From contig OZ037765.1 of assembly GCA_964035545.1 (NCBI GenBank), positions 32,549,504-32,613,503 on the forward strand: a stretch of DNA of 64,000 nucleotides, read 5' to 3'. The notes beneath the pieces were generated by a model. The model was not told the origin of the DNA and made no database searches. It saw only the letters and a program-made list of their open reading frames with translations. The stretch comes from Bugula neritina. Its lineage: Eukaryota; Animalia; Bryozoa. This document shows, piece by piece, positions 267 to 41,557 of the stretch; position 1 is the first letter of the stretch; each line of letters opens with the position of its first letter. A program made the translations under genes and the position numbers.

Positions 267-8388
<8,122 letters not shown>

Positions 8389-14149: not shown

Positions 14150-17100
14150 ATGGGTGGTATTGCAAGCTCGTTCCATGCAGGTATGTGGTCATAATTAGTA
14201 GTTTACATTTTGGATACTTTTTTTAATACAGTTTCATTGTATATGTTGTCAATTTATCACTTTGGTTGAGTACTGATCTTGATATTTTTCAATAGTTAGT
14301 AGATTTAAATGAGGTCAATATTAGATTGTTTGTTTTGGTATTGGTTTAAGTGTTAACTCAGTGAGTATATAGATTACTTAAGGACTCTTAGTATTAGGGC
14401 TATTAGATTCTATCAACCCAATATACATTTAAGATGTAGTTTTAGTATTCAATTCAAGCTAATGTCAATGGATGTTATTCCAGCAAAATACAAGGTCTGG
14501 TTCCGGCATTCTGGAGAGCCTGCAATTAGCCAACCTTGGCATGATAACGAAACTAGGCTTTACACTAAGGAAGAGCTGATAAATAAAATTGAAGGCCATA
14601 CAATTACCCACATGATAATAGATGGGGATGTACCAACTCACCTTAATCTTCTAATTCCACACTTGAGTCATCTGGCTGTCAAAAAAATCAAGTCTGCAAA
14701 CACCCTCATAAAGTAAGGTTTATAGCTTGCAATTTGCAGTCTCTTGATGAGACATTTGTATTGTCATACTCTGATTAGTCTTCTTTTCAAAGTTGGGTTT
14801 TCTAAATATTGTAGGTAGATGAAAATAGTATTGTTCATCCTTGATTACAGCTTTTTTCTACAAAATAGCAACTAAACCTTGAAAAAAAATTCCTTCACAT
14901 TCTAGGACTAATTTTGTTCTATAATGCATCTTTGATTTTCTTTTAAAACTTCATGTAAAAATAATGTGACTACTAAGACCATACATAATAAAATTATTAT
15001 TTGACATAGTTATGAATCTTGTTCACCCTACATTCCTGCAGTTCATTCCGATCACGCGATGTTTTATATGTCTATCACGTCTGTTATAATACTTTTCAGT
15101 CTAAAATATTTAGTGTTACGCCTATATTTAGTACATTTACATGTAAAATATATTTTTTTATAATTTAATCAGTTAGAGCATAAACTGAAAATATTTAACC
15201 TTTCGGAAACTTTTTTGGGTTTTTTTAATGACTACAAAAACCATAAAGGAATATTGACATTTACTCAAAGCAGCTCTGCAATAGGTAACCAATTATGCAA
15301 TTTATTCGAAACTGTATAGTAGCTGCTGCAAGTAAAATTTTTGACTAGTTTTATGTTGTTTGAAAGTAAGTTTTTTACAGGAACTCTAATTAGCCCATTG
15401 ACTTAAAACTAAAATTATGACAATTTAAAAAATTGACGGGTATATATATATATTTTCTTAATTCTTAGTTTTACCATTTAAGGCATACAATAGCCTTCAG
15501 TGTACCATTGAAATGGCTGGTTTCTAAGACAATATATTCAAGTATCGTCATAATATGCAACAGCTCAGTATATATGTGTTTCCCAGATAGTGAGTGCTAG
15601 GATTAAATTATTGATTATTTTATTCTCCTAGTTTTTATGCCACTCAATATACTCAGTCTCTGTTGCTTTTGACTGCTGAGTTTTTAAAGTAAAATGAAGG
15701 TTGCTTTGAGAATGTACTTTTATTTGCTATTGTTTTTGCTTCATGTTCAAGTTTTTGTTAGCATAACTGGAATATGTAGAGGTATAAATATATTATTATA
15801 CTCAGTCATTTGATGCTTTTTCAGCTCTAACATTTTACATGTGGTGTAGGTTTGAGCTTTCTCAGAATATGGAGAAACCTAGTGATTTTATTGTCTGTCC
15901 TAACCCAGGCATCGCATTATATTATAATATAAAAGTGTGATATTTATCAAAGTGTATAGACGTTATTTTACCACAGTATGTTTTTGTTGAACCACCTGGA
16001 CAGGCGTATGTCTGAGGGTTTATCTGTATGCTATGTTTACAGCATATCTTCACTGAGGAATCTTGAGGTGTTGAATATCTCAGGAAATAACCTGTCTGAA
16101 GGTCTACCTGACGATGTATTCACATCCTTGCTATCATTGAGAGAGTTGAACATGTGGAACTGTAGACTGGAGACTTTACCAAACAGGTATGTGAGTTGGG
16201 TTTAAGGGTTGCATGACAAGCATTTGTGAAACGCATGCATTTTTTAGTATAACTCATGTACCCCTCAACGATTGGTTAAATAGCTCATTTCTTGAGCATG
16301 CTCTTAGGTCTTATGGGGTCTACAGGCTACAGTAGGAACTGAACTGTGAACGTGAATACTTTCAACGTCACTTCCTACTTTTTGCTGGTCACACTACAGT
16401 TCACACTACAAACGCTGAATGCTAACTGTCTCTAGCCCCTCTCCCCCCAGTTAACTTTTAACTAATAGGAATGCCGTAGCTTAGTCTCTGCTTTGCCTAC
16501 AGCAGCCAAAAATTAAATTTAGCGCAATTTATTGAGATTTACTAGCATAATTCAATAAGATTTACTAGCTATTTTTATCCTAATTTACTAGCTTCACTTA
16601 TATTCAAAATTACTAGCTTCATTTAATGAGATTTACTAGCTTTATTCAACCACATTCACTAGCATAACGAACTAAGTATGCTAATAAAATTCAGCCAAAT
16701 TAGAATAGCCAAATATGCTGATACAATTTTTAGCCAAATTTAGCTGCTAAATATTTATTTTCACAGCTAACTTTTATTAAGATTTGCATACGTAACTTCA
16801 TCATAATAATGCTAAGTAAAATAATATAGTTTTCGAATAACCAAATCAAATAATAATGCTCGCTAGTAGCACTTGGAATAAGTAAAAGCACTTAACCAAT
16901 CAGGGCATACCTGGCCAGTCAGTGGTTGGCTGAACGCATCGAGAAAAAACTGACGGTTGTGTTCAGAAATCAGACAGTTGTGACATCACAGAGTTTAATG
17001 CTTAGCCCCGAAAACCTTTCACAGTTCAGTTTCAACCATAGACTCCTTAAGTTTGTGAGATTAAAAAACTGGTTGTAAACATAAAATGTTGCTACATATT

Positions 17101-20100
17101 TTAGTATCCTACAGTTGAAAAATCTGGAGGTCTTAAATTTATCATGGAATAACCTATCTGAAGATCTACCTGACAACATATTCACATCCTTACTGCCATT
17201 AAGAAAATTGAACATGGAGTACTGTAAACTGCAAACTCTGCCAAGCAGGTATGTAGGTAGTATGTATACTAAATAATGAAATGAAAACATCATTGACTTC
17301 TGTACAAAACCTCAACATTATTAATTAATCAATTGGTGTTGGAGGTACTGTTGAGCCATGTTGGGGGGGGGGGGGGTATCGAACATACTTGAGTTATTTT
17401 GGGTCCTAATTTGTTGATATTTTCAGCACAACTTATTAAATACTTTCACTCTATGCTAGCCAAACCTTTTTGAATTTTGAGACTTTACAGCATTGTACTG
17501 GAGAGAATAGCAACTAGAAATACTAAGTTACTTAATGCCAGGAACACCATAGGCCAGTTACAAAACCCAGATGATAACAGCACAAATACCTGTGGGTGAT
17601 CACCCAAGTTAACTTATTTGTCAGTAGTTCATATTTTGTTCAATATTTGTGAGGTGATAGAAAAATATGCATATCATTTGAAAGCTGCATATGTTCTCTT
17701 TACAAGCGTGTTTTAAAAAATTAGATCAATTTGGTTTTTCCAGCTAGTACACTTTTGGGGGTCATTCCAGATAGAAGCTTTCCAGTTAGACGCTATTTAT
17801 TTATTTATTTTGGTACAATAATATATGTATTTTATGAGCAATTTATTTGAATTTTATTGAAATATACTGAGGTGAGGTGTGAGTAAGTGTGACTGTTGAG
17901 CATAATTCGGCATTATTAAATTTCCTTTAATTTTCAAATAAATTCCTTTGTTCTTTATTACCTTATTAATTTTACGTTTTCTGTACTTCTTGTTGTTTGA
18001 AAAAATATTTTAGGATAGGTATTTATTAAAGATAATGTCTATTATTAAGGTAATACTGTGTTTGTCCCTCACAATACTGTGAAAATTGTAATAATGTTAT
18101 TCCACATAATTCATATTAACTATTATTTTATTTTTAGCAATCAATATAAAAGTAATATAGGCATATTACTATATATATGTTCCAAAATAAAAAGTAGCAT
18201 CTAAGTGGGAAGTTTCTATCTGAGATGAAACCTAATTTTGAACCAATCTACTCAATTAAGAGTTGAGATAAAACTATTTTAGCACAAAACTTGCTCTGAA
18301 TCCAGCTTTTTTTGAATGAAATTCTTTGAAATTAAATTGGCGACACTGTAAAGGGCCATTAAGGATGTCGGATTCAAAGTTTGCAAAATTAAAACCTGTG
18401 TAATTTTTACTAAAATATTTCTATCTTAATGCTAAAATGAGTATATTGGTTCAAAATTGTAGAATTGAAAAACTAAAATCAGCTAACATTTTGAATTATT
18501 TTTCCAAAGAGAACATTTATAGTTTTCCAATGATATGCATATTGTCCAAACTTTGGTTAGACCCATAATTTCGATCACCATGTCATGCTAAATATCGTCC
18601 TTGGTATTCGAAATAAACCAACTGTTGATAAGGTCACTTCACCTCATTTAGTATACACTAAATAAAATCATAGTTCTATGAAAATTTAGCGGCTGATATG
18701 TATGCTTTTTGTTGTAAAATAATGAATTGTTAGCAAATAAATCCAAATGTTCAGGTATTTTTCAAATTTTTTCTCTGTCTCTTAATTGTTGAATGATTAG
18801 TAAAAACCCTACCGGTTACAGTAATGATTATTAATAATAATATGATGATAATTAATTAATAACAATGCATTCAGCTGTTGGGGTCTCAGAATTTTTTTAC
18901 ACCTTACAAGGCCTGCTAGTTGTGCTATAGCAATACACATGGTGAACAGAGTATTTCTTCCTGTATTAGTCAATGCTGTGCAATGAATGTATTCCCTAAT
19001 GTTGTTAGCATAAACTAGTTGTAAAAATTATTGTCCTGAAATCTTAAGTTTTTTATATGTGCATATTGTGTGGTGTGTTGCAGTATATCCCTACTAAAGA
19101 ATCTTGAGGTGTTAGACATATCCGGAAATAACCTAACTGAAGGTCTACCTGACAATATATTCACATCCTTACTATCATTGAGAGATTTAGACATTGGCTA
19201 CTGTGAATTGCCAACTCTACCAAACAGGTGTATATCAATTGTAGAAGATCAAATTAGACATTAGTCAATTTTATATTGAGACTTTGCCAAGTCATTTTTT
19301 ATACAGAGTGACAATGTTTTTATTAAGCTATTATTGAATCTGATATGTGTTATCAAGTGAAAGAAACCGTGAGCTTTTTTAATGTTTTTATTCATTGAAA
19401 TATAATTTAATTATAGTCATTGGTTGAGCCAATCATGGATTTTTTAATTTCTATTATCAATTTGGCAATGCTAAACGTGGCTAGTTAGATTCATTTGAAC
19501 TTTCATTTATTGCCATAATGTACATAAGCAAATTGTACTATTTTATGCTGTGAAGTGTGTGCATCTTTGTGTCATAACTTGTAGTTCCATTATTTTATAT
19601 AAATATTTTTGCAGGTTTTCACAATATTATAGAATAAATATTATACTATGTTTATCCAATATTGCAGCATATCTTCACTGAAGAATCTTGAGGTGTTGAA
19701 TATATCATGGAATAAGCTATCTAAAGGTCTACCTGACAATATATTCACATCCTTACTATCATTGAGAGAGTTGTACATGAGTTACTGTAAACTGCCAACT
19801 CTACCAAACGGGTGTGTATAAAGTAAAGCTAAACCATTTAGCCATTTTTCGATCATGTTGGCACTAGGCCTTGTTATAATAGACCATGTAAAACTCAGCC
19901 AATCAGCGAAGTGTACCAGGTCAATGTCTTACCATTGTAACTGATATAAAATCCTGCAAGTTCAATTGCAAAATGCATGCTTCTAAAAGCTAGTTGTGCA
20001 ACTTTTTTTTCATGCATTATTTAATTTCATATCTTAAATTGATGACTCTTGAAATGATTTTTTAAAATGTCTAAATTAAGTGTTTATAAAACGCAATTAA

Positions 20101-23100
20101 AAATTGCATGTCTAGAAAAATGACCTGGTACACTTTTGCAACTTAAGGCCAATTATTACATAACTGCCAGCTTAGTAGTTATTTGTTGTTGCAGCTTGAA
20201 TGGGTTATTGTTTAGCATTGGAAGCTTGCAGTAAACATCTGTGAATTTGGTACATGACTTTGATTGGCTGGTTTTTGAATGGCCCTTTAGTATATGCATC
20301 TGAATGCTGGGTAGTGTAGACTCAGCCTACATCTAGCTAATGTACAGTAGCCAATCCACAGTAGTATTACAAAATTTCTGTTTAACAAATGAAATATTCT
20401 GGTCATTTGTTTTGTACTTTACAATAGTAAATATTCTATTCAACTGGAATTTTATTGTATGTAAGCCATGGGAACTACTAAGAGGTTAAATCAACCACCC
20501 ATGCTAGTAATATTGTTGCAGTAATAGCAAGTCCACACCATGTAAATATACACATAAGCTATTATGTGCAGCTTATGAATGCTGAAATGACCCCATTTTT
20601 TACTTTCAATTTGAAAAAAATTGTATTACATATTCTGCCACTTCTGCACCAAGAATTTGTTTTCCTTTTAAATTTTGAAAATAGTAGTCAGTTTCTGCAG
20701 CAGTCAACTGCATCCACAATAAACAACGTAGGCTTTCAAATAAACTATAAATATATGAAATATTAGTGTGGAAACAATGTAATTTATTCATTGCTATGAT
20801 GGAAAATTACAAGATTATATAAAAGCTAGATATATATTTCTATAAAATGGCACAGGTAAAAATAACACATTTTTACTTCAAATTCTAAATTTCATCAGTC
20901 ACCAATAGTGGCTGTAGATTACAGAGAGCACAGCAGACTATCATAATCATAATCATAAGAATGGTCAGCCCACTAAGCAAAATCCAACTTCAATCTTTCA
21001 TTTGGGTTACTAACGCACTAAAGCATATAATGTAAGACGCGCAAAAAAACAGTGGTTTTAATGAAACATGTGAAGGAAGCAAACAAAAAACGTCTTCAAC
21101 AGAGTCAGCTGATATAGAGCAACAGAACTCATCTGACAGCCATCCTCATAGTCAGACTTCATCAGAAGTAACTGAGTTACCAGAATCATCAACTACTCAG
21201 AAAAAAAGATCTGCACATTCTATTGATAGACTAAAATCAAAAGTTGGAAGAAAAGGCTCAAAAAGTTCCACGTTTAAACAAAAAGCAACTATTGAAAAAG
21301 TAAGTTTTCAAAACTTTCACCACTACAGATAAGCAAACTAAATTCTATACTGAACTACCTACACGTTCTCTATACTATTTTTTAGCAAAGTGAAAATTAT
21401 GATTTTCTTATTGCAAAGATAGACTATGGTTTATTACAAATAAACAATGCAAGTCTCACTATGCTAAAATTTCTACATTGATTAAATTTGATGTGTAGTA
21501 AAACTGTCATTTTAATTAAATTTGTTGCAGTGTGAGTGCATCATTCATACATTTTTTATTAAAGATGTTGTTTTATGTAAGATATTCATAAATACCACAG
21601 TGGTCATCTGTATGCTTTTTCCTTTTTTAGTTTAGGGTTTTATTTAAACAAGCAGCAGTCTTTTATTTGTGGACAAATTGACTCACTTTCTCCAGGAAAA
21701 GTAAATTGTTTTGACTTAAATTTTCCTTGGTTATTTTAAAGCTTATCAAAAGTGGCCTCCTAATCTAATTTTTAGCTGAAACTAACTCAGTGTTTAAAAC
21801 TAAAATGGTTTACACTTGTTACTAGTTTCACTTATTCACAAACATTATTGAATGCTATTCTAGAAATAATATGGGTTTGAATTAGTTATAGTATAATTAT
21901 AAAATGAAGTAATAATTGTTTGTCAACACTATTTGTTTAAACTCATGACTTCATTCAAAGCATGTATTCATGCAACTAGCTTATCATGTACTGTTACAGT
22001 ATTATGTAACACATGTTGACACACATTACATTCTGTTTGAATGGTGATATATTGGGTCAAGCCTTCAGCTAGCAGTTCTTGAACTTCATAGTTGTTGCAA
22101 AATATAACTGAAGCTACTTACCAGAGGGTAAAAACTGCCAAATGAATACAAACTAAGCACAAAATTTATTTAGCACATACATTATAATTTGAATCATAAT
22201 TTAATTTTCATTCTTTATTTACTATATTTAGATTTATATGTCTGAAGATGAAAGTTCTCACTCTCAGAAAAAAGTTAACAGGACAAGATAAACTTTAATT
22301 GGCTTTGATGAAGCTGCGTCAAGGTTTACAGTTTCAAATACTTGCTAGCCTTTTTTATATCTCTAGATTGCTAGCAAGCAAAACCTTCAAAAACACATTA
22401 GATATTTTAGCAAGAGAACTGAACAATCTAATAGTTTTTCCAACAGGAGAGAAGCTGAACATCCCTCTGAGCTTTCAAAGCCAATATGCTAACATTAGGT
22501 GCATTATAGACTGCACAGAAATATCCATTTGCAAGCCTCAATCTGTAATCTACAGCCACCATTGGTAACTGATGAAATTTAGAATTTGAAGTAAAAATGT
22601 GTTATTTTTACCTGTACCATTTCACTAGAAATCTATATCTAGCTTTTATATAATATTCTTGTAATTTTCCATCATAGCAATGAATAAATTACATTGTTTC
22701 CACACTAATATTTCATATATTTATAGTTTATTTGAAAGCTTACGTTGTTTATTGTGGATGCAGTTGACTGCTGCAGAAACTGACTACTATTTTCAAAATT
22801 TAAAAGGAAAACAAATTCTTGGTGCAGAAGTGGCAGAATATGTAATACAATTTTTTTCAAATTGAAAGTAAGAAATGGGGTCATTTCAGCATTCATAAGC
22901 TGCACATAATAGCTTATGTGTATATTTATATGGTGTGGACTTGTTATTACTGTGAGCTACAATATTACTAGCATGGGTGGTTGATTTAACCTCTTAGTAG
23001 TTCCCATGGCTTACATACAATAAAATTCTAGTTGAATAGAATATTTACTATTGTAAAGTACAAAATAAGTGACCAGAATACTTCATTTGTTAAACAGAAA

Positions 23101-26100
23101 TTTTGTAATACTACTGTGGATTGGCTACTGTACATTAGCTAGATGTAGGCGGAGTCTCTACTACCCAGCCATCCAGATGCATATACTAAAGGGCCATTCA
23201 AAAACCAGCCAATCAAAGTCATGTACCAAATTCACAGATGTTTACTGCAAGCTTCCAATGCTAAACAATAACCCATTCAAGCTGCAACAACAAATAACTA
23301 CTAAGCTGGCAGTTATGTAATAATTGGCCTTAAGTTGCAAAAGTGTACCAGGTCATTTTTCTAGACATGCAATTTTTAATTGCGTTTTATAAACACTTAA
23401 TTTAGACATTTTAAAAAATCATTTCAAGAGTCATCAATTTAAGATATGAAATTAAATAATGCATGAAAAAAAAGTTGCACAACGAGCTTTTAGAAGCATG
23501 CATTTTGCAATTGAACTTGCAGAATTTTATATCAGTTACAATGGTAAGACATTGACCTGGTACACTTCGCTGATTGGCTGAGTTTTACATGGTCTATTGT
23601 AGAAATTTGAAATAATTTTTGACATGCCCTCAAAGTTATGAGGCTGACATAGTTGGAAAAGCTCCGAGTATAGAAATTCTAGATTTAATGCCCAGGATCA
23701 CATGCAATGAGTTCAGAGAAAACATTTAAAGACACCTCTAGTCTCTAATTCTGTTGATGTCCTGTGTGCAATCTTTGCTTAGTAAAAACTTTGTTCTTAA
23801 AAATAGTAGCTGAGTTACTATGACTATTAGTCTAGCTACGCCTTAGGGTTTCCTGTTGGAATATTAGTTCTATTTACTGCAATTATTATTTTAATTAGAA
23901 GAAAACTGCCAGGGAATGTTGGTTGAATTTCTGTTCTTTGCATATACATGGAATATGCATTTCTATATTTTTAAAATTACCTAGTGCTGTGTATTCAGCA
24001 GTGATTTCTGGGTGATTTTGTGTACAGTTTCAGTCAAAAGTGTAATTTTCTGTTCACTATTGTATAGTGAACAGAAAATTATACCTTGCATTATTTGACG
24101 GCATGTCTTTTTGTAACTGTACTCTATTCTCAACGAGTTGGCGTAGTTTTTGACCAATAAACCAATATACTTTTTCAATGCAATTTGCTGAGTTAGTATA
24201 CTGAGAGCAATTGAGCAATTTTGCTGCTGAGCCTAAAACAGGTGATACCAGTTTTATTATTTTTGAAGAACCTAGCATAATAAGGTACTTAATATAAGCT
24301 GTTCATATTACAAACCTGTTATTTGTTAGAATATATACACCATTCATGCTTTTTTGTTACAGCATATGTTCACTGAAGAATCTTGAGGTATTGAATATCT
24401 CAGGAAATAACCTGTCTGAAGGTCTACCTGAGAACATATTCACATCCTTACTATCATTGAGAGAGTTGAACATGAGTGTCTGTAGACTGGAAACTTTACC
24501 AAACAGGTGTGCTATGTTTTACATTAGAACACAACTACAGTGCTGTGAAAAAGTTTAAGGACACCTCCCTGTTTTCCATAATAGTAATGTTCCAAGCTAA
24601 TTTTAAAACATAACTGAAGCATTTCCATAAGCGTGGTGCCTATCAAAATGATCCTTAAGATCTCCTTATCTCATTCATATAGAATATAAGTGTCTCTTTT
24701 TACATCCTCCAAAAATTTGGGTGAAACAACAAGATACTATGCATATATGGGAATTATTCAATGTTCTCACAATTTGTGTGCACTGTATGACATCAGAATG
24801 TTTTACTCAAAATATAGAAAAATATTATATGGGGTTTGTTATACACCTTATAGCAGCATTGCAACACACAGTGCACTCAATTTTAGTATCAATATTTTGT
24901 TGGCCAGCCTTTATTCCTAATCAGAAGTCGACAGTGACTCGTACAGCTTCTCCAACTCATTTTCAGTCACGACATAATGCCAAGCATGAATTACAGACTC
25001 TGTGAGTGTCACCTTAGTTGTTGGCTTTTTTGAGAAGACTTTTTTACCCACTCTTGATCATAATTTTCTATAGGGTTCAAGTCAGGGCTTCGTGCTTGCC
25101 AGTTGAGCGTTGAGACCGTCTGCTTTTTTATCCACTCTTTAACACTCCTCGCCCAATGACATGGTGCATTGTCATCTTGAAATATGTAAATTACATTTGG
25201 AAAAAAAGGTTTTTATAATTGGAAGAAATTTAGCATTGAGATTAATATTTATATATTTTTGGGTACTAACATCATTCCAGAGCAAATACTGAGTTCACCT
25301 ACCATTTTGATGTTATACAATCCTAAAGCATAACACTGATTATAGGGTGCCTAATTGTTCTAAGTACACATTGGCGGCTATATTTCTCATACTGGTATCT
25401 TCTAACACAGTAGTTTTCAGGATGACTGTTCACATTAAATATGGATTCATCTAAAATAATTACTTTTTTTTCAAATCATTCACTGTCTAACTCCCATGCT
25501 CCCTGGCCCACCGTAAACGATTTTTTTGCTGCTTCTTGGTTGGTAGAAGCTTCTTCTTGCTTTGCGGCCATGTAAGCTATGGCTCAGCAATCTTACCTTA
25601 TCAGAAATGTCTAAGCTGGTGTTCTTGTTGATTCTGACCATTCCTTGCCAACTCAGGACTTGTTTTATGGCGATCCTTTTTGCTGATCCCAATGAGAACC
25701 TTGTAATCTCTAGGTGTGCTTATTTTTAGTCATCCACTTTCAGGTCCATCTGCTACACTGCCAGTCTTCATAAACTTCTTGATAATTTGATGTAAAGTTG
25801 TCTTTGCTTTGCCAACCTTTTCAGATATTTTCCTAATTGAATAACCTTTCTTATGCAAGAAAATTACTACAAACCTTGCTTTTGAAGTAAGATTTACACC
25901 TCTCATTTTGTCTATGTGCAGCAGCCAAGTGGTCACCATATAAAAGCTCACAACTGAAGTTGCGTTTATACCTCTGCTGAAAAAAGTACCGAGTTTAAGT
26001 TAATAATGCTTGTCAGGGCACTCCTTTATAGTCAAACTGAAACTCGTTGAAATCATATTGATGCGGTTGCTCACTTTCTGAAATTGAAATTTGACTCGCA

Positions 26101-29100: not shown

Positions 29101-32100
29101 TAACTCAAGACTTTTTTCTTTCTGTATTAACTGTTAGAAGCAATAAACTGACAACAACAACAACTTATGAGCGTGAACAATAAGACAATGAAAAGCATCA
29201 AGCTCATTTAATATGATTCTTGTAGTTATGTATATACCATGACTGCCTTTGTCCTTTTTATCTAAAATACTAGCTAAATTATAAATGCGTTTTTCAATCA
29301 TCTCACTTTAATTAGTGCACACCAAGAAACTTTTACCCAAAACTATTAATTATTCTTCAAATTATAGAATAATTTGTATTTAGATGTAAGTTGCATATAC
29401 ACAGGCCAGACATTGTACTAGCTGATTTCTTTATGGCTGATTTTGCAATCGGCAAAAAGTCTAGTCCGGAGTTATTTTTCTGCTTGCGTTTTATTGGCAG
29501 ATGGCTCTCAGTCTATATAACTTTCGTAAATTTATGCATAATAATAAATAATTTCAACAATGGTGTTAATCGGCCGATTTTGAAACTGATTTTTCACAAT
29601 TGAACATGATCAATTTTTCGCAAATAATTGGTTGAACCAGCCAATCAAAAAATCACGACAACGAGTGCGATTAGCATCATTATTGAAATACAAACAGGAA
29701 GTAATTAATACATTCCTATTACTATGAAAAATAATGTATTAAAATAACTATTAATGGCAGTAGTAGTAACAAAGGATTGGCTGTTGTGTAACTTTGAGAA
29801 ATTTAGTGTCAGTTTCATGGAAATCTCTTAAATATTGCTTTTTATGATTGAAAACTGGCATTATTCTTAACTTTTACTCATTTATAATATAATTTATAAC
29901 TTGTAGTTTATATGTTGTTGTTTTTATAGTATCTCTGTAATATCAAGTCCTATTCTGTGTAAGAGTCCCCTTGCGGCCTTTACTTTCACTCTCACAATGG
30001 CCAATATCGAAGCTGGTAGGAAATCCTAATGCTTGTAAGGCAGTTAGCCAATCACCTCAGGTTAGCTTGTAGCTTATCTGCTAAAGACTATAAACCACAT
30101 TATATTCCAATCTCAACTTTACAATTTAATTTTTTTGAAAGAACATATTTGCCGCAGTTGACGGTTTTAGTTAACTATATAAACAATAGCGCTTAAGTTA
30201 AACTTCTAGTTTTAAACTAAATAGCTTAAAAAATTTTGTAAGTGATGTTAATAGTGTAACTTAGTAATTTATGGATAATTAGACATTAGATCTAGTTAAA
30301 TAAATAGCTACCAAGCCAGCTATTTGTTTTTTAATTTAATACTAAAATACCAAAATTAGCATTAAATTTTTACGAAACTTTCAAATGCAGCAAGCTGTCA
30401 ACAAATTATACACAGCCAGTTTATTTTATCCAGTTTTTATTTATTAAAACATCAGAATAAACAGAAATGTTGAAGTAGCAATATCTTGATTGGTTTTATC
30501 AATTTATGTTATCAGTTTGATTTTTCAATTTAAATTTAAATTTCTTTATTGTTTCTAGCCATTTCACTTGTGAAAAATAAAAAGATATAAAAATTGCCGA
30601 GGTATGTTTACTATGCTAATGCACATACAACTGATCTTGACCTCTTCGAGTGAACCTAGAAGAAAGTTATATAGACTGAGAACCATCTGCCAATAAAACG
30701 CAAGCAGAAAAATAACTCGGGGCATTTTTTAAACATTTTTCGCCGATTGCAAAATCGGCCATAGAGAAATCGGCTAGTACAAAATCTGTTGAAATAATCG
30801 ACCTGTGTACGTGCAGATTTATAGCTTATTCACACGATCAACGAATTGGACGAATAGCGGACCAAAATGGCACGGCGAATACAAATTTTGTTAGTTTTGG
30901 ATCACGTGATCGACTTTTCACAGTTTCGTTGGAACCTGACCCAGCTAGGTTTCAGCTGACGAATTTTTTCTGATTGCGCTCCATTGGCTTATTTCAAAAA
31001 GCATAATTCACATGGCAAACATTTCGGCATTGTAACTAATTTAAATAATCAATATTTTAGTAATATTAATAATAATAGATACTAATTAATTAAAATAAAC
31101 AAATTTGTAGGAAGCATATTATTTTGCTAGTCAGCAGCATCTTAAAATTATTTTAAGCAGTTTTCATGACGGAATTACGTTTTTTATAGAAATTATCATA
31201 GCTTGACCAGCTGCATGCTCTTTGTGATCCTGAATACAAAGATGCACGTAAGCAACTGAGTCGATGTGCACAATGAGTAGCAGTGACTTGAAAAAAAGTT
31301 AAAATGTAGTTAAATTGAAACTGATGCAACTGAATCATTTCACCTAAAGTAGACACTACCAACTTCTATTTTATTTTATAATTGTTCCAGCTGAAACATC
31401 TTAGCTATAGTTCTTTCATAGAAAAACTACTATAAAACAGGTCATTTTAATTTTTTATTTTGCAACAATAAAAAATATAAGTAGAATGAGTAATGAAAAG
31501 CTGCGAAAAAAATAGGTAATCAGTTTGAGTTTGATATAAAAGCACGACCAGGGCATTGCAGTTTTACGTGTCATTTTCATTTCCTTTTCACAGTCCAACT
31601 GTTGTTAAACATAAATCTACTAAATCTTTAGCTAATAAATTTGTCGTAATTCAAATGTTTCATATTTGATTATAATCATTTTATTAACGCAAAATTTTTA
31701 CCTAGTTATCGCTAAATTTAAATAGTCACAACTTTACTAGTAAAAGCACTGTTGCTAAGCAACTATACACTACTATTGCAGCTGGCGCGACAAAGAAGTG
31801 CGATGATTGTTAGTTGGGCATTCGTCGGACCCAACGAACCAAAAAACGTCGTGTGTGAATAAGCTATTAGACCAATTTTGATGGGCTGACTCTCAATTTG
31901 ACCTCAAATTTTTTTGTATGACAGCCTGCTGCCATAATAACACAATGTCAAGTGCGTTTCATTACATAATTTAATAGCTCACAGTTTGAGTAAACCATTC
32001 ACTAGTTAAACATACAGTTTCTTGTAATAGTCTAAATTCTAAATTTGAATGACAACTTTTGTAACTTATATAGACAATAAGTGGTGCAATGTGAATTTTC

Positions 32101-35100
32101 AGTCATGAAATAGCGTAGCTGCCATGGTTTGTACTTCTTTTTTATTCATAATAATAGTGTTAGAACACACATTATTTTGTTATAGAGTATTTTCATTATG
32201 CTGATCACTTCCACTGTCTTTCCATGAATCCATCTCAGTTCGATATAAACCAGATCCATCTAATGTGATCAGTGCGATTGTTTTTCCATGGCATTCTAGG
32301 TTAAATCTTGAGTAGTTGCCTTCTGTTATCCGCAGAGTACTTGAATAAACTTTGCTAGTATAATTTGTTCACCCACCCGAGAGACTAAATCTACTTTGAT
32401 TAAAAAACGGAGTTGTTGATGGTGCTTTATGCTCTTAATTTTTTTAGCTTAGCAGCTTATATAAAATTAATAGCTGCTCAGCAAATTATTCACTAACCTA
32501 CAAGATTGTTAGCAACAAATAACTCACGGGAGCAATTTTTATTTGTCGAGTAAATTCAATTTAAGTGTCCTGTTTTTACTTTCTGCGATCTATAATTTTA
32601 TAGAATTGAGCTTTCTCAATCATTGTAATGGAAGTCAAAGTTTTTTCATCTGAAAATGTGGCCACCGTGATTCTTCACTTTGCTTATAAGTAACTAACAA
32701 TAAGTTGTCATTTTTATTAGCACACAAAAATTTAGCAAGCAGTCTTTTTCTATTTCTCAGATCGATCGTCGTTATGTTATCTGTCTACATACCCACAAAT
32801 TTTAGTTGCTTCGTTCCAGGAGCCTTTGTGTAATCTAGAATAAAATATATGACACTTGTTGCAGTGATCTGAGATTACTGGTGTGTAATTGTAATTTCGG
32901 CAGCAACTATCAAAATTAAATATTTATATAACTCTAAATTGAAAGACTGCACCATTGACTTTTTTCATTCTATCTGCATAGCTAAATGAAGTATAGTCTG
33001 CTAAGTATTGGCCTGCTTTAACGGTTCTATTTCAATTGTAGAATACAGAATCTACAGAAGTTAGAGAACCTGAACATATCAAGGAATCAATTCACCAGTT
33101 TACCATCTCCTGTGTACACATTAAGTAGTCTCCGAGTCATGAACATATTGTACAATCACTCCCTGACATCCTTAGATCCTGAGATACTACAGCTAACTCA
33201 ACTTCATACACTGGATGTATCTGGTTGTAATGCTCTCACATCTCCTCCACGAGAAGTATGTGAGAGCGGAGTAGATGCTGTGAGACAATACTACACAGAC
33301 TTGGCTAAAGGAGCTGGTAGAAGTCTTCCATTTGCTACTATAGCTGTGCTGGGTAATACGATGGCTGGGAAGACCAGTCTAATCAGAACATTACAGAGTT
33401 CTGACAAAAAGAGAGTTCTGACTAACAGAGGGCCAGATGCTGTGAGGGATGAGACAACAAAGGTGTTTAATGTTGAAGAGGTGGAAGTGGATGGTACAGT
33501 ACTCCGTGTCATTGATATGGGAGGCCAGGAGGTCTACCATATCACCTATCAACTGACACTGAGACAGAATTGTATTCCAGTCATAGTAGTCAACATGGAA
33601 CAGTATGATGAGATTTCAAAAGAATCAACACACAGAGAAGCTGTTAGAAGATTAGCCTTTGATTACATGTCTCACCTCTACCTGGCTAACCCAACTCTGG
33701 GTGCTCCAAAACTTATCTTCACACATACAGATAAGTTTCAAAATGCAGAATTTCAGAAGCTTCGAAAGAACTTTCTAGAAACTTCCAATCAACTGTGTGA
33801 GGAAATGATTAGAGAAGAGAAAGCACTGGGTGGAGAATTTGCTCAAATCAAACATTTCAGTGAATCAGCTGAAGGAGTTTTTCTTGGTGAGGACATTTAT
33901 GAGGTTGGGAAAGATGATAAGTATGAAGTGTTTGACCTGATCAAGGAGTCTCTTCTTCAAAGCAGTCAACATTTTGTGAAACCGTTACCTCTGGTTTGGG
34001 AAGAAGTGAATGAAAAAGTGCTGTCTATTCCCTCTGTGTACAGTACCTTTGATGAGGTACTGAAATATGTGCAAACAGAACTTCAACACATTGAGTCAAG
34101 TCAGCTGGACATAATCCTCACATACATGCATAACTGCGGCAAAGTCTTGTGGTATAAAAATATCAGCTCTCTCCGGCCATACATATTCTACAAGATTTCA
34201 GAAGTTACCAAACTTCTCTGTGTCTTGTATCACCACGATTCTAACATATGGCAGAGTAGAGTTGACAAGTTCCAGCCGTATTACTCAAAGCCCGAAATGC
34301 GTTTTGAGAAACAGGACTTTGAGGAATCTGTTAATTGTTTCACAGACACTGGTTTGATGATGCAATCTCTTCTTGTTTATTTGATTCAAAATGAAACAAT
34401 ATTTCACAGTTCTGAGAATGTTGAAGTTGCTATCCGCTTGCTCCAGACATTCCAGTTGTTGTACGGTCCTATACATGGTGGCTCTGCAAAGCCATGTTTT
34501 GTTGTACCACAGTTTGCCAGCGATTACTACAGAACCTCATCCTCTCAATCACAAAATCTGCTCCTTCAAGTTGGAACGCAGTTCAATGGTCTAGCCCTGC
34601 CACGCTATGTCTACCAGCAAATGACGGTTGGCTTGTTGGAGTTGTTTCCAGACGAGTTTGCTGTGATGGAAGTGAAGAGAAATGGAGCCAATGTCTATCA
34701 AGATGGAATCTACACGCAGCTCGTACACGACTATAAATCTAGAAAAGTGTTACTCCAGGTGTCATCTAATGCTGCCAACATCAGCAGAATGTGGGAGAGA
34801 CTTATCACCACCAACAACAACATCCTTAGACATGTTCTAAAAACTTGGACAGCAAGTAGAGCAGTCACTACAAGCTACTGTGCTCACTGTCTTCTCCTAC
34901 AAGTTCCTTGTCCTAAAAAAATGCTCAATCCTCCATGGTGTCTTCGTTCCTTGAAACATCCTACACCAAATACCAGGCTGTGCAGTGGATCTTCAATGAC
35001 ATTGTGTAACGATGAGGCGATTCCCAGTGCTCTACTTCACCCTTGTGAGTTGATATTTTCTGCTTTTACTGTGATATCTTTTGAATAATTGACTTCTCTT

Positions 35101-38100
35101 TACTTTTTGTTTTGAATTAATTTTATCTTTTACATTAATAGGCGAGTCTTTGTCCGAGAGCGAAGTTGCAACGATACACGAGTTTGTTGACCATCTTGTG
35201 AAAGTTGGGAATACTCGAAATGAATTACGTGTTTCAGGTATGTAGCTTGATACTAAGTGAGCAATAGTAATTGTGTCATTCACAACTAAGAGTACGAAAC
35301 AGATAATACAAATTATTTCTAACTGCAATATCTTATAAAGTCCTTTCTGATAATCATAAATCGTCTGTTAAATTTATAATGATATTTTCTCAGATCTAAA
35401 ATGTCTCTGTTTTGTGTTAATGCACTTTCATGTAAACTGTTATTTTGTAAATGTTGATTTAGAACTAGATTTTATTCTTGTTTAGATGAGGCTTTGGCAG
35501 AAGCAGAAACTGAGAAGTTGGGCAATCAACTAAAATCGGAAAGAGAACAAAACACTCCATCCGGTAGTTCCTAAGTATTTGTAGGCGTCTTCTAGCAGTA
35601 TTTTTTATATTTTTAGCACTTGCTGAAATATAGGCCTACAAAAATATATTATTATAATGTAAAGCTAAACTAAATTCTTTCTAATTTTTTTATTCTTAGG
35701 TTTCTATTACTATGCTGCTACTGCTGCTGCTACTATTACCACTACCACTAATCCTTAGAAATGTAGTGTATAGCTTGCGTGTGTGCCAATTTGCTTCAGT
35801 CGGAAAGTACTTCGACTTGTTTATTTAGGAAGCAGTCATATAAAACTAATTCAAGTGAAATCAAAATCGAAGCAAGTGTTAACAAGTTTTTGATTAGCAA
35901 AACTGTATCAAATATCTAAAATTAAATTGAATAAAATTTTGAAATTACTATAAAATAAAGCTTGAAAAACTTTTATAGGATTTGTGCAATATTTTTGAAA
36001 AGTGTTCATATTGAAACTTTTTGATCTAGTAAAGGAAAACACAGATGGCCTAAATACATACAAAATATGTAATTATGTCATTTGAATGCATGAATCAAGG
36101 TAATTAATATCTGCATAACAATATTGTTTAACAAATTTAAAAATAACATAGCTAAATGAAATTACCATTATATCTCTCAGAATTGTAATGTAATAGTAAA
36201 CTGCCAAAATGGCTCTTTTGGCTCTCGTACACTGAAGGCTCAGTTGAGTGATGTACTGGCCCAAGAAATCTTATTACTTCACGTGACTGTTAATGTGCCG
36301 GTATGATGTAAACATGTAAACAAAGTAGCATGGCTGTGCCATCTACAAGGAGTAGGATTTAGTTTGCTTGAGATTGTATCTGGACCTGTCAAAATTTGTA
36401 TTTTGGTTGTCAAACAATAAATGCTCAGAGCTAGAAAGAAGTTCATCTATTTCTGTGTATTTGTAGGATCTTCTTCAGTTATCGATGATGAGTTGAGTGA
36501 TCTTTCAGATGATGAGTTCATGGAGCAGAGTGATACCTTACATAGACAGAGTGTAAGGCCAACCTCAAACCCCAGAATTCAGAGCCTGTTTTATGATACT
36601 GAAAAGGTATAAAGAAAAATATTTTGAGAGTTCATAACAATTCTTAAAAAACTTTTACACCTTAACAATCATCAGTGGACAATTCAATTTCGATAAGTGG
36701 ATTTTTTGCATCATGAAAGCAACCTGCTCAGATCATAGTTCTGCTATCACTTTTTGGCTCATGTTCAATCTTCAATAATTACTTTCTTTATCAACTAATT
36801 TACTTCAGTCATGTTATGTTTTAATAAATAGGAATATTTATTGTCGCAGACTGAATGATAATTGCAATGTGAAACCTGTTACATCATAAGTTGTAAGTAT
36901 AGTTGCAAGTTGTAAGTAGCAAGTTGCAAGACGCAAGTGTGGAGATAAGTGAACAAATGCTAGGTTTTTATACCAGTTTAAAAGGTTAGCTATTGTGTAG
37001 TAACCATATTGAGTGTGTAGAAAGCATAATAATATAGCTGGCATAGCTGTGGTGATACATGAAAAGCTATACCTAATGAATTAGGGAAAAGCTCTCCCAG
37101 CTTATGTAAAGTCCCAACCAGTCATTTAAGTAAAAGCTATGATGTAATCCTACTACATAGGTTCTCATCAATATGATTTCAATTAATTTCAGTGAAGCTA
37201 TAAAAGGGTGCTTATCTGGGTTGAATGAACTCTACCTCGGTGCTTCAATTTCTATTATTTATATTTGAATGAAACCTTTGTCTTTCATTTATTCATCATA
37301 GCTGCAAGCGATTTATCAAAAACAGTTCTGGTGAATTGCGAAGTTATCATTTCCAATTTGTACAGAAAGCTGAAATTATCCTGAAAGAATCTTCGTTTTT
37401 CAACTCCGTTTGTCAAATAGTCTGCCTATATGAGCTTAACACTGCATAACCTACTAGATAAAAATGGCACAGGTAGCAATGGCACAAATGGCAAAGCAAG
37501 TAAAAATGGCACATTTTCAATATTAGGGTTTGGAGTAATGGTTGTGGGTTTCAAATGGGGGGTTTAGGTTTGGGGAAAATTCACCATCAGTGTGTCATTT
37601 TAACTACTTTTCCATTTGCGTCATTATTACCTGTGCCATTTTATGCTGTCGGGCCAACCCCAACAAGACAGCTTGATAATGAGGTTGCTGAGAGTTCACT
37701 CCATCGGTGCTGTAAAGGTTCAAACCAGCTTGTTAGTTTCTTCTGCTACTCAGTGGATTGTGCTTGTCGTAAGCAGCCTGTTTGTTTACCAATCTCCGGG
37801 CTTTTATTCACTCAACAGCAGCTATGATCTTTTATTTCCCTAATTGTCGGCAATCAATTCAATTTTAATTTGCATAAGATATTATGGTTACTATTGATGT
37901 TCTTCAATTGATAGATATTAGCTGGAAAGTTTATGCAGCATAGCCAATAATAATTTGTATTGGCAATTTAGCCATTGACACAAATTTTCACTGAGTATGC
38001 ATTAGTAAGAAAACTTTCAAGTACATTTTTTTCAATGTGTCTAAAATAAGATTTCTTCATCTTTCTTTTCTGTGCAGGTGTTCAAGATGTCTCCCATAAG

Positions 38101-40195
38101 AGGTAGAGCCTTGATAATCAATAACGCATCTTTTTCTGATCAGCATCGTGGTCCCGAGCTAGATGTTATTAATATAACAGACATGCTCAAACAGTTCAAG
38201 TTCCAAGTTTCAATGTTTGACGACATCACAGCTGAGGTGAAATTAACTCTTGTGAAAGTTTTTTTTAAAATGGCAACTTGTTAGATTTTATTCACTCAAT
38301 GTCTTATTTTTCCAAGGCCTATTCAATCCCATTAATGCAAATGGAAAGCTGCTACTGTAAATTATTTTCTAGTGCTACAGATTTTTTGCAGTAATAGAGC
38401 TACTTTTAGCTACTTATTATTGTTTAAATCAAAGTGACTTTAAAGTGCAATAATTGTACCTTACAAATATGTTGTGCTCTAAGCTGCACGGATAATGAAT
38501 GCTCTAGGTCACTTATACTCGTTCAAAACATCCAACTCATTTAAGAAATAATGGCATGGTTCGTTGTGTTAACAGTTACATGTATATAATCTTTAACATA
38601 AAATCCAATTGTCCCAGGTTTAAAGATCAAGTAAAAATCTTCCTTATCAGAACTAAATATTGTAGCAAAGCTTTAATGAACCTTATTCTTTTATTTAAAA
38701 ACATCCACCAATGAGGAATGTTTTGTTGTTTTGAAATAATAGCCAGGTTTTGTATCTTCCCAATACCAAGGTTTCTCTGATTATTTTCAACAGGATATTC
38801 TCCGTGTGATCAGGAATGAGGTTGAGGATGACCGCCATGAATACTATGGCACATTCTGGCTATGTATTATGGCTCACGGGTCTGGTGATGATTTTGTCTG
38901 TGGTTCTGATGGTGCTCTTGTTAGTCTAAAAAGTGTCTATGCTTTACTTTCACCATTCAACTTTCCTGGTATGGCTGGGAAACCAAAGGTGGTAGTTATT
39001 GAGACATATAAAGGAGGTAAGTGGTTGGAGAACTCATGATAGCACGTATACTGCTCTCACATTTTGTGCACATCTAATTTTACTGTATCCTGCGTCATAT
39101 TTGGGTTTTATAGTTGGTGCCCCAGGCAATATTTCATCTCACATGGGACACACCCTTGTAAATTTTCACATATTATATTGTATGGGAGGGAGGGTCTATT
39201 ATTTTCTTTCTATTGACATTTCTTGTCCCATTTTAATTTTTATTTTTGGAATCCAAATTCCTTCATCAGCGCTACATAGGAACTCTACAATTCCTGCCTT
39301 TGAATTTGTTTAACTTTATTTACACATGTTCTCCTTTTAAGTGGAACCAGTAAACAAGTCTAGTGGCCTACATTTTTTTAATCTGCATGTAATTTAATTC
39401 CTATCAAATGTCAGGCCCAGAAAACTACTAAACATTTAGTGTCAATTAACAGGGAAGTACAAGTTAAGGCATAAGTGTTGAAAGCTTTTTTTTAAATTTG
39501 GATACAAAAGGTTCTTTGCATACATAGTTTGATAATCTATTTGCATATATAATTTTGAAATATTTAGAGTTTCCAGATTCAGAAGAGAAATCTGTTGAGC
39601 CATCAGCGGTCAAAGTCCCTTCCAGCGAAACTCCATCTTTCCCTCCAATCACACAGTTGGAATGTGATGATTTGCTGATAATCACATGCAAGTCACATAG
39701 ACATGATATTGTTTACTTTCTAATTATCATCATATAATTTTTCCTAACAATATTTTGTAACAGAAATATATTTCTTGTTCATAAAACTATGATTGCAGCT
39801 TTTTGTAATGGCAGCTTTAGTGTTAATGGAACTGTTTTACTTTATAATTTTCTGGTCACCTACCATTGTTTCAACTCTAGACTTTTGCCACATATTTATG
39901 TTGTAGCTGGTCTATCAAATAGAGATTTCAATCATAGCTCCACGCTAATCAACTGCCTAGTTCGAACTATGTACAGGCATGCTTGTCACAGAGATATGCA
40001 TGAAATCTTCAAGATTGTAAGTATAGGTGGTAGCGGTCTCCCAAGGCTGAAAATAATTGTGTAAATGTGTTTATACTGTGGTAATCGAACATCTCAGATT
40101 GACCAAATCTACTCAATTTTTGTATGCTTTCTTACACAAAACTCCCGGATTGTGATCAACTGCTACTACTACTACTGCTACTACTACTGCTACTG

Positions 40196-40227
<32 letters not shown>

Positions 40228-41557
40228 GCTACTATTGCTACTACTACTACTATTGCTACTACTACTACTGCTACTGCTACTACTACTACTACTACTACTG
40301 CTACTATTGCTGCTACTACTACTACTGCTACTGCTACTACTACTGCTACTACTACTGCTACTACTACTACTACTACTACTACTGCCACTACTAATACTAC
40401 TACCACTGCTGCCAGTACCACTACTGCCAGTACTATTACTGGCTATTAAAGGCATATTTCAATTCCAGATATAAGCAAGTACCTACAAGTTTGCCACGGC
40501 ATTACTGTGACAAACTGACATTGCTAAATTGTTGCATTCTAGTATACTTTATTACTCACTTTGTTGCTTTTTACTGTACAATAAATGGAGTTATATAGAA
40601 AGTTTTAATAAAAATTGGAATATTATAAACTTACAGTACTTATATGTGGCAGTTGACATAGTTATTAAAGTGCAAGAGACTCGGCAAATACTGGCAACAC
40701 CCTAGGGAAATGGGGAAATATTATCTGGTGTCTTATCTGGCAGCAATTTGTTAAATTGTTGCAGGCAGTTTTTATTTTCACAATTTGTTGGTTTGAGTCA
40801 TTTGTTAGTATTTCAGAGTAGCTTTAATATTACGGCTAAAAGCAACACCACTTTGTTTCATAAAATTACAGTGGGGTAGGCTAGCAAAGTTTAGCTCAAT
40901 GAGTAATATTATTTTTTCAGAGTGCTTTCTGCTACTTAGATTTTGGCAAATATCAACTTCAAAGCAGAAAAGCAGTTAAATGGTTATTTAGCCCTGCTCA
41001 CGCAAAACAACCAAGTATAATAGATTTCATTTTAGGTAGAACACTTGCAAAAAGACAAAATAAAAGTATTTACATGTATATTTGGTCTCTGTCCTTTCTT
41101 CTGAGCATTGTTTAGAACTGGGTGGGGTTGATAAATTTTGTATTACAAGCAACATAATTGAATTAATACATAATGGCACAGCTATAAATGTACCAGTCCA
41201 AGCATGACTTAGTAATAATTATCAAATAATGCCTACAGATATTTACTATACTATACTCTTAGTTTGTCACAAATAAGGTCTATAATGGCTGACCTCTACT
41301 GTACAGTCTAGTACTAGTACCAGTAGCTGCACCTAATTGGGAAAACAAATCATGTTGGCTAACAATTTACTTAATTTCCTGATGAATTTTAGGTGGAGCA
41401 CCGGGTGAGAGAATATTGGATTAAAACCCGAAAAATCGGACAGTCAACATTGATTATAGACACGCTGACAAGTTTTAGGAAGCTTTACCTGTTTCCTGGA
41501 TATGATGGCTCCCGCAAGCATGGACTTGGGTATACTTCTCGTAGACGAGGCTCATAA
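14150..41557 (+). CDS. Gene B: LRR-Roc-COR-pseudocaspase fusion protein (~1453 aa)
   Basis: Exon model: 14150-14180, 14484-14712, 16043-16186, 17105-17248, 19084-19227, 19668-19811, 24363-24506, 27568-27711, 28558-28701, 33042-35044, 35142-35237, 35486-35563, 36467-36606, 38078-38236, 38794-39016, 39568-39687 (GC donor), 39907-40016, 41393-41557 (TAA). All junctions are phase-compatible and give one open frame with LRR, Roc G1/G3/G4, COR and caspase p20/p10 motifs. Confidence 0.8.
14484..14712 (+). CDS. Gene B N-terminal exon (LRR cap region)
   Basis: Part of ORF 14462..14716. Acceptor ttattccAG at 14483, donor GTAAGG phase 2. KYKVWFR aligns with gene A KIKAFYIR. Confidence 0.7.
16043..16186 (+). 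CDS. Gene B LRR cassette exon 1 (two LRRs, 48 aa)
   Basis: AG..GT, 144 nt, phase 2-2: ISSLRNLEVLNISGNNLSEGLPDDVFTSLLSLRELNMWNCRLETLPN. Confidence 0.9.
16325..17045. mobile_element. Degenerate MITE in LRR intron
   Basis: ctacagtaggaactgaactgtgaa (~16328) vs ttcacagttcagtttcaaccatag (~17019); internal tttactagc repeats. Confidence 0.45.
17105..17248 (+). CDS. Gene B LRR cassette exon 2
   Basis: 144 nt, phase 2-2: ILQLKNLEVLNLSWNNLSEDLPDNIFTSLLPLRKLNMEYCKLQTLPS (not in the ORF track on the + strand). Confidence 0.9.
17665..18545. mobile_element. Degenerate inverted-repeat element in LRR intron
   Basis: atgcatatcatttgaaa (~17667) vs tttccaatgatatgcat (~18524); ccagatagaagcttt..ttagacgcta vs tagcatctaa..aagtttctatctgag. 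Confidence 0.45.
19084..19227 (+). CDS. Gene B LRR cassette exon 3
   Basis: 144 nt, phase 2-2: ISLLKNLEVLDISGNNLTEGLPDNIFTSLLSLRDLDIGYCELPTLPN. Confidence 0.9.
19668..19811 (+). CDS. Gene B LRR cassette exon 4
   Basis: 144 nt, phase 2-2: ISSLKNLEVLNISWNKLSKGLPDNIFTSLLSLRELYMSYCKLPTLPN. Confidence 0.9.
19881..23595 (+). mobile_element. ISL2EU (PIF/Harbinger-related) non-autonomous foldback transposon with ~1.05-kb inverted arms
   Basis: Arms 19881-20925 and 22542-23595 are near-perfect reverse complements; AT target-site duplication; THAP-tail-like NGQPTKQNPTSIFHLGY (~20960) and transposase remnant LMKLRQG...IIDCTEISICKP (22299-22541). Confidence 0.85.
22299..22541 (+). pseudogene. Truncated ISL2EU/Harbinger DDE transposase fragment
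   Basis: HTH_Tnp_4-like LMKLRQGL..ILASLF.IS and first catalytic motif IIDCTEI, cut off at the right inverted arm. Confidence 0.8.
23596..23900 (+). repeat. Intronic direct repeat copy 1 (copy 2 at ~27742-28040)
   Basis: About 300 bp nearly identical downstream of LRR exon 4 (once the transposon is removed) and LRR exon 6. Confidence 0.9.
24363..24506 (+). CDS. Gene B LRR cassette exon 5
   Basis: 144 nt, phase 2-2: ICSLKNLEVLNISGNNLSEGLPENIFTSLLSLRELNMSVCRLETLPN. Confidence 0.9.
24538..26756 (-). mobile_element. Decayed Tc1/mariner transposon
   Basis: TA|CAGTGCTGTGAAAAAG left end, degenerate ...ttcacatcactg|TA right end. Minus-strand HTH (LHKKGYSIRKISEKVGKAKTTLHQIIKKF..TGSV, 25730-25906), QDDNAPCH (~25170) and SPDLNPIEN (~25075), with frameshifts and stops. 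Confidence 0.8.
27568..27711 (+). CDS. Gene B LRR cassette exon 6
   Basis: 144 nt, phase 2-2: ISSLKNVEVLNISENNLSEGLPDNIFTSLLSLRELNMEDCKLSALPY. Confidence 0.9.
28043..28262 (+). pseudogene. Two relic LRR exon fragments (3' end with donor at ~28043-28070; 5' end with acceptor at ~28226-28262)
   Basis: gctggaaacacag|gtgtgct resembles the exon 5 3' end; tatag|c atg tct tct ctg aag aat atc gag ata tta (MSSLKNIEIL) resembles the exon 5' end and then runs into a stop. Confidence 0.6.
28302..28534 (-). mobile_element. tRNA-derived SINE with 17-bp TSD
   Basis: Minus strand gggagcagccgtggtcaaggggttaa (A box) ... gttcgagtcc twice (B box); flanked by tatacttgtatcctata at 28285-28301 and 28535-28551. 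Confidence 0.8.
28558..28701 (+). CDS. Gene B LRR cassette exon 7
   Basis: 144 nt, phase 2-2: ISSLKNVEVLNISENNLSEGLPDNIFSSFQLLRELNVGNCELLTLPN. Confidence 0.9.
29387..30820. mobile_element. Non-autonomous DNA transposon with degenerate long TIRs
   Basis: gtactagctgatttctttatggctgattttgcaatcggcaaaaa (~29415) vs ttttcgccgattgcaaaatcggccatagagaaatcggctagtac (~30737); ttatttttctgcttgcgttttattggcagatgg is also inverted near 30682. Confidence 0.65.
30822..31866. mobile_element. PIF/Harbinger-type MITE
   Basis: 14-bp TIR tagcttattcacac / gtgtgaataagcta, flanked by TTA on both sides. Confidence 0.7.
33042..35044 (+). CDS. Gene B large exon: terminal LRRs, Roc GTPase, COR
   Basis: ORF 33112..35088. 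G1 GNTMAGKTS, G3 DMGG, G4 THTD; COR motifs PLVWEEV, YMHNCGKVLWY, FVVP; CAHC tail. Confidence 0.93.
36838..37117. repeat. Dispersed repeat; inverted copy at ~63037-63278
   Basis: Shared aatatagctggcatagc..gtgatac.tgaaaagcta..tagggaaaagct.tcccagcttatgtaaagtc. Confidence 0.75.
37459..37644. mobile_element. Small foldback element
   Basis: aaaatggcacaggta ... tacctgtgccatttt inverted ends with a G/T-rich core. Confidence 0.55.
38078..41557 (+). CDS. Caspase (peptidase C14A) p20/p10 domain exons of gene B, catalytically altered
   Basis: VFKMSPIRGRALIINN..F; CIMAHG (His codon 38875-38877); GSDG; GKPKVVVIETYKG (Tyr 39007-39009 at the Cys position); DDLLII; STLINCL; GQ....DTL..FRKLYLFPG. Confidence 0.88.
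40161..40440. repeat. (TAC/TGC)n microsatellite
   Basis: Visible run in the last intron of gene B; source of the poly-L/Y/S/V ORFs. Confidence 0.95.

Follow-up and report, generated by a model that had tools for sequence, protein, structure and literature searches.

The window, that is, the whole stretch of 64,000 nucleotides of the Bugula neritina genome that was analysed, contains an 18-exon gene on the plus strand (14150-41557), whose exons are compatible in phase and free of stop codons and together encode 1453 amino acids (4362 nt). All introns have AG acceptors and GT donors, with the exception of one GC donor at 39688. A short first exon is followed by a family-specific cap, seven leucine-rich repeat (LRR) exons of 144 nt, one exon of 2003 nt, three linker exons and five caspase exons, and the encoded chain carries an LRR array, a Roc GTPase, a COR domain and a caspase fold in this order. 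Domains were assigned by searching Pfam exon by exon, and a fold was predicted for the large exon. A paralog is located head-to-head with this gene on the minus strand. The features are as follows:

1739-8388, minus strand: head-to-head paralog, LRR exons and Roc-COR exon; position 8388 is a candidate start
14150-14180, plus strand: exon 1 with the start codon (phase and splice model)
14484-14712, plus strand: exon 2, family-specific N-terminal cap without Pfam match
16043-28701, plus strand: seven LRR exons of 144 nt, symmetric phase 2-2, two LRRs each (Pfam, phase), starting at 16043, 17105, 19084, 19668, 24363, 27568 and 28558
33042-35044, plus strand: large exon with the final LRRs, Roc GTPase and COR (Pfam, motifs, AlphaFold/Foldseek)
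35142-35237, 35486-35563 and 36467-36606, plus strand: three linker exons (phase, RNA joints)
38078-38236, plus strand: caspase exon 1 (Pfam; RNA joins on both sides in four of four runs)
38794-39016, plus strand: caspase exon 2 (Pfam, active-site reading)
39568-39687, plus strand: caspase exon 3, intersubunit linker and start of the small subunit, GC donor (GC-AG joint in four of four runs)
39907-40016, plus strand: caspase exon 4, small subunit (RNA joint)
41393-41557, plus strand: predicted last exon, ending at the stop codon (phase and splice model; weak match to the C-terminal end of a Watersipora Roco-caspase)

Several other elements share the window. An LTR retroelement at 45144-50811 has identical 539-nt LTRs and one ORF of 1484 codons, in which integrase precedes reverse transcriptase (Gmr1-type order) and which includes a SCAN-like Gag part; it is apparently a recent insertion. 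An intron of the LRR array harbors an element (19875-23601) whose inverted arms of 1,060 nt are 97% alike and which contains pieces of a transposase-like ORF, and a Tc1-like remnant is found near 25480-26000. Exons of an apparent MFS transporter gene occupy 50987-57345 on the minus strand, with tandem arrays of 29-nt, 44-nt and 61-nt units in its introns.

Four probable RNA runs, each from a different study, yielded contigs that were aligned to 34150-40100 and have joints at all seven predicted introns between COR and caspase exon 4 (35044 to 39907). The join from linker to caspase and three joins within the caspase are present in all four runs, and the three linker exons that the sequence-only reading had placed between COR and caspase are confirmed by joints on their predicted introns. 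The single frame which that reading had traced from the LRR exons to the caspase is likewise borne out, its named features lying where it had put them. Splicing from COR to caspase is documented by a chain of overlapping contigs, none of which spans the whole distance. The contigs match caspase exons 1 and 2 at 96-98% and the COR end at about 84%, the latter being, judged by identity, a paralog-level difference. These two observations are what speaks for LRR-Roc-COR and caspase exons being separate transcription units, or the fusion a minor splice form. Such an arrangement is nonetheless highly improbable, as joint depth in one run is equal (25-28) from COR through caspase exon 2, a separate start for the caspase is lacking and RefSeq/GenBank models of three genera hold both parts in one chain. 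The LRR-Roc-COR-caspase fusion is thus confirmed as a real, single gene. We discarded the possibility that the donor after caspase exon 3 is broken, as the GC-AG intron 39688-39906 is spliced in all four runs; in the joined exons, the small-subunit loop is about four residues shorter than in canonical caspases. The N-terminus (MGGIAS) is a candidate N-myristoylation site, judged by the Gly2/Ser6 pattern. Furthermore, the linker between COR and caspase contains an acidic DLSDLSDD-like motif (DLSD), conserved family-wide and encoded here by the third linker exon (36467-36606), which might serve as a site for self-cleavage by the caspase or for CK2.

The GTPase appears intact, as the sequence-only reading had stated, with G1 GNTMAGKT (33352), G3 DMGG (33514) and G4 THTD (33721) motifs at the expected positions. 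Pfam Roc scores 31 bits against a cut-off of 27 (E 3e-7), and the COR-A match is weak and below cut-off (E 2e-3). The AlphaFold model of the large exon (mean pLDDT 91) retrieves LRRK1 (E 2e-22), the Chlorobium Roco protein (E 5e-21) and also LRRK2 in Foldseek, aligning with their Roc-COR over 580-760 columns, and COR follows directly after Roc, as in Roco proteins. Compared with close paralogs, the Roc-COR exon has a dN/dS of about 0.3, indicative of purifying selection; the ratio is 0.15-0.27 in Roc, and the last LRRs have a dN close to or exceeding dS. The seven 144-nt LRR exons are 72-91% alike, and their variation peaks in the second repeat, at those positions that are predicted to be exposed (pN 0.29 versus 0.12 elsewhere).

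The effector end of the same chain has lost its catalytic residue. Two of the caspase exons match Peptidase_C14 (E 2e-8 and 9e-6) and caspase exons 3-5 have matches in the small subunits of relatives, which together represent a p20/p10 caspase fold, the full fold model being that of a Watersipora relative. Caspase exon 2 retains the catalytic His (38875), but the catalytic Cys is replaced by Tyr (codon TAT at 39007-39009), giving ETYKG instead of QACxG and leaving this copy without the His-Cys dyad of C14A caspases. The S1 pocket also lacks the Asp-specific set of Arg179, Gln283 and Arg341: the Arg179-equivalent is probably His (38144, with the register uncertain by one), Gln283 is Glu and only the Arg341-equivalent is kept. 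Because of the Tyr and the probable His, a built-in working protease is unsupported for this copy, so that of the full caspase fold which had been claimed the fold stands and the catalytic Cys does not. The Tyr active site may be private to this haplotype; a metagenome scan for the caspase exon of an ortholog returned four weak 27-residue matches, none covering the Tyr codon.

B. neritina encodes a large family of such genes. Caspase exon 2 has 130 matches in its own genome and the exon 2 cap has 91. In the 128 related caspase exons that were read, Cys is retained in 113 and lost in 15, distributed over several clades, with five different replacements (Ser in 10, Asp in two, Tyr, Ala or Leu in the rest). 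The residue before the catalytic Cys motif, canonically Gln, is Glu in 57, His in 13 and Val or Leu in eight of the 128 exons, which may alter substrate preference. All 66 scored matches of the Roc-COR exon are followed by a same-strand caspase exon, mostly within less than 5 kb and always within 16 kb, and the same holds for 23 further Roc-COR exons, so that 89 of 89 among the matches listed have a same-strand downstream caspase exon within 16 kb. These counts are lower bounds (at least 89) and pairing was established by reading coordinates. Additionally, a GenBank protein from B. neritina matches the genome at 96%. The family looks like a set of about 90 mostly active, one-piece LRR-Roc-COR-caspase death or immune receptors, and the proposal of a built-in caspase effector thus fits the family (113 of 128 exons with Cys) but not this gene with its Tyr.

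A search of the genome yielded one partial NACHT match and no NB-ARC match, although intron-split NACHT or NB-ARC domains could escape detection. The protein itself does not contain the STAND ATPase (NACHT or NB-ARC) that defines NLRs, its switch being a Roc GTPase, and its likeness to NLRs is functional only. An NLR-like receptor in which Roc-COR takes the place of NACHT/NB-ARC, as had been suggested, is plausible for a large variable family in a genome nearly devoid of these domains; the part of the suggestion that gave this copy an active protease does not hold.

Comparison with paralogs places the two ends of the gene in different clades. The Roc-COR exon is 82-87% identical to one paralog cluster (dS 0.2-0.3) and the LRR exons are 86-89% identical to the same cluster at the DNA level. 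The caspase, in turn, is only 35-50% like the caspases of the closest Roc-COR relatives, with saturated synonymous distance, and groups with loci that have a Roc-COR identity of 45-50% (SH-aLRT 95, 72 columns); trees were quick IQ-TREE runs without bootstrap. The exon 2 cap is also closest (47-53%) to the clade that holds the nearest caspases. The gene is a mosaic with LRR and Roc-COR exons from one paralog clade and the caspase from another, which is most simply read as the result of recombination between its COR and caspase exons. Accelerated drift alone was rejected as the cause of the divergent caspase, given its saturated dS as opposed to 0.2-0.3 in Roc-COR. The Roc-COR modules of the cluster are on average 81% identical, and two caspase types occur behind them, with a similarity of 44% between the types and about 90% within a type. 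Near-identical Roc-COR modules with unrelated caspase types show module exchange among paralogs. The contig with 84% identity in COR that is joined to the linker of this gene hints that other animals might carry a different Roc-COR at this locus.

A gene of such origin could be a recent recombinant with a decaying caspase module, which is transcribed and spliced without a selected role. The mosaic origin, at least two active-site changes, a long branch (0.6) and transposon insertions in the introns are consistent with decay, and birth-and-death families yield such copies. Nevertheless, we regard it as rather doubtful, as the frame is open across 18 exons, loss of Cys recurs in the family and every RNA-examined intron, including the one with the GC donor, is spliced in samples of four studies that diverge from the window sequence by 2-4% in the caspase exons.

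The head-to-head neighbour has defects of the opposite kind. Its GTPase is degenerate (P-loop GPSESQKNT, no DxxG), and its caspase exons, located left of the window, keep His and Cys (QACSG). The two genes are divergent, about 5.8 kb apart and complementary in their defects, a single case of this kind having been seen. The neighbour is single-copy in the genome (next best match 29%), and its Roc-COR exon has a dN/dS of about 1 relative to a related JGI contig while still containing an open frame of 640 codons. Paired plant NLRs likewise face apart, and the two genes could form a dedicated pair of this type, with the gene described here providing GTPase and LRR sensor and its neighbour the caspase, an arrangement to which orientation, complementary defects and the single-copy status of the neighbour would all conform. 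We nevertheless consider it unlikely because it is one case in a paralog-filled chromosome arm and because a dN/dS near 1 in the Roc-COR exon is unlike a conserved helper.

Our preferred reading, held with some confidence, is that the gene encodes a GTP-switched pseudo-caspase receptor with variable LRRs, which would act through a catalytically active partner as c-FLIP does. Initiator caspases are activated by dimerization, and c-FLIP(L), with Tyr for Cys, tunes caspase-8 in heterodimers. The LRR arrays of the family would sense an intracellular ligand, the nucleotide cycle of Roc-COR would alter the oligomeric state, and this change would either bring the tethered caspase domains together as an active dimer or separate them. 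Because this copy is unable to cut by itself, it would act by pairing with a catalytically active paralog, which it could license or damp as c-FLIP(L) does with caspase-8, and recombination would reshuffle modules among paralogs into new sensor-effector combinations. The initial proposal that COR dimerizes and the caspase then fires is too simple, since the best-studied Roco protein, that of Chlorobium, is a dimer when nucleotide-free or GDP-bound and a monomer with GTP (PMC5714945). As GTP binding favours monomers there, the Roc-COR switch of the bryozoan family may run in either direction.

The Tyr for catalytic Cys in a caspase fold is a replacement which this copy has in common with c-FLIP(L), and both are plausible regulators of an active partner. 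This copy differs in that no tandem death effector domains were detected by Pfam in the scanned exons, its N-terminus being LRR-Roc-COR, that recruitment, if any, would proceed via Roc-COR, and that it is derived within the bryozoan family. Integrated decoys are known in plant NLRs, and the caspase-like domain might alternatively bind a pathogen caspase inhibitor while the signal is transmitted via Roc-COR. Repeated loss of Cys and the exchange of caspase types behind near-identical Roc-COR modules are compatible with a decoy; since the catalytic dyad is retained in most members, an alternative output domain is lacking and the LRRs already offer a variable surface, this is very unlikely.

The nearest named relatives are RefSeq proteins of Watersipora subatra, whose gene models contain LRR, Roc-COR and caspase in one chain, one being modelled as Roc-COR plus caspase fold. 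About a dozen Branchiostoma models also combine LRR, Roc, COR and Peptidase_C14, and all of them keep QACxG. The sequence-only reading knew of no characterized animal protein with this architecture. The layout as such is shared by Watersipora and Branchiostoma gene models, with the design partly in print (PMC2575513, PMC8195603); in agreement with the narrower point of that reading, our literature search found no characterized animal member, no paper on the bryozoan family and no functional test of any member. Amphioxus LRRs-caspase hybrids, for which a direct link from recognition to apoptosis was proposed (Zhang et al., 2008; PMC2575513), also unite sensor and caspase in one chain, but that paper does not mention a Roc-COR core, and the Branchiostoma models considered here are possibly not its genes. 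Because the Roc-COR of these models nests among other amphioxus Rocos, including GT4-bearing ones, far from the bryozoan clade (quick unrooted tree), the comparison suggests that the amphioxus and bryozoan fusions are separate. In amphioxus (Branchiostoma) Rocos, COR is followed by a GT4 glycosyltransferase, death or caspase domain, resembling the variable effector slot of bacterial proteins.

Bacterial LRR-AP-GTPase-COR conflict proteins, for which at least 24 effectors including caspase are listed (Kaur et al., 2021; PMC8195603), resemble the bryozoan family in their fast-evolving LRRs, their GTPase of the Roc type, their COR and the variable effector at their C-terminus. They are prokaryotic, predicted only and present in up to 11 copies per genome, whereas the bryozoan family has a metazoan p20/p10 caspase, introns and about 90 copies, and swaps caspase types rather than effector folds. 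MFHAS1, LRRK1/2, DAPK1 and the Chlorobium Roco protein have the LRR-Roc-COR core and fold in common with it, but are single-copy and conserved, with a kinase, a death domain or no domain as output. Brown algal LRR-ROCO genes, which are candidate immune receptors, similarly have LRRs on separate shuffling exons before Roc-COR (PMC11378527); they lack a caspase and encode one LRR per exon as opposed to two in the bryozoan gene. The bryozoan family is a variant of a known design and not a new category.

A broader and improbable extension is that Roco-caspases, about 90 in number and recombining, are the main intracellular receptor class of bryozoans, which are nearly devoid of NLRs, and that pseudo-caspase sensors trigger partners with active caspase and pseudo-GTPase; if true, paired NLRs would have in this division of labour an animal counterpart based on a GTPase. 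This copy adds that pseudo-enzymes recur at both ends of the chain within the family. If the family works as proposed above, it would constitute an animal receptor class that couples an LRRK2-type Roc-COR switch directly to a protease. As caspase activity depends on dimer state, the family could provide a simple read-out for whether GTP-bound Roco proteins signal as monomers or dimers, which is disputed. For bryozoans, it would also be a first point of entry to the study of intracellular immunity, symbiont control or the turnover of polypides.
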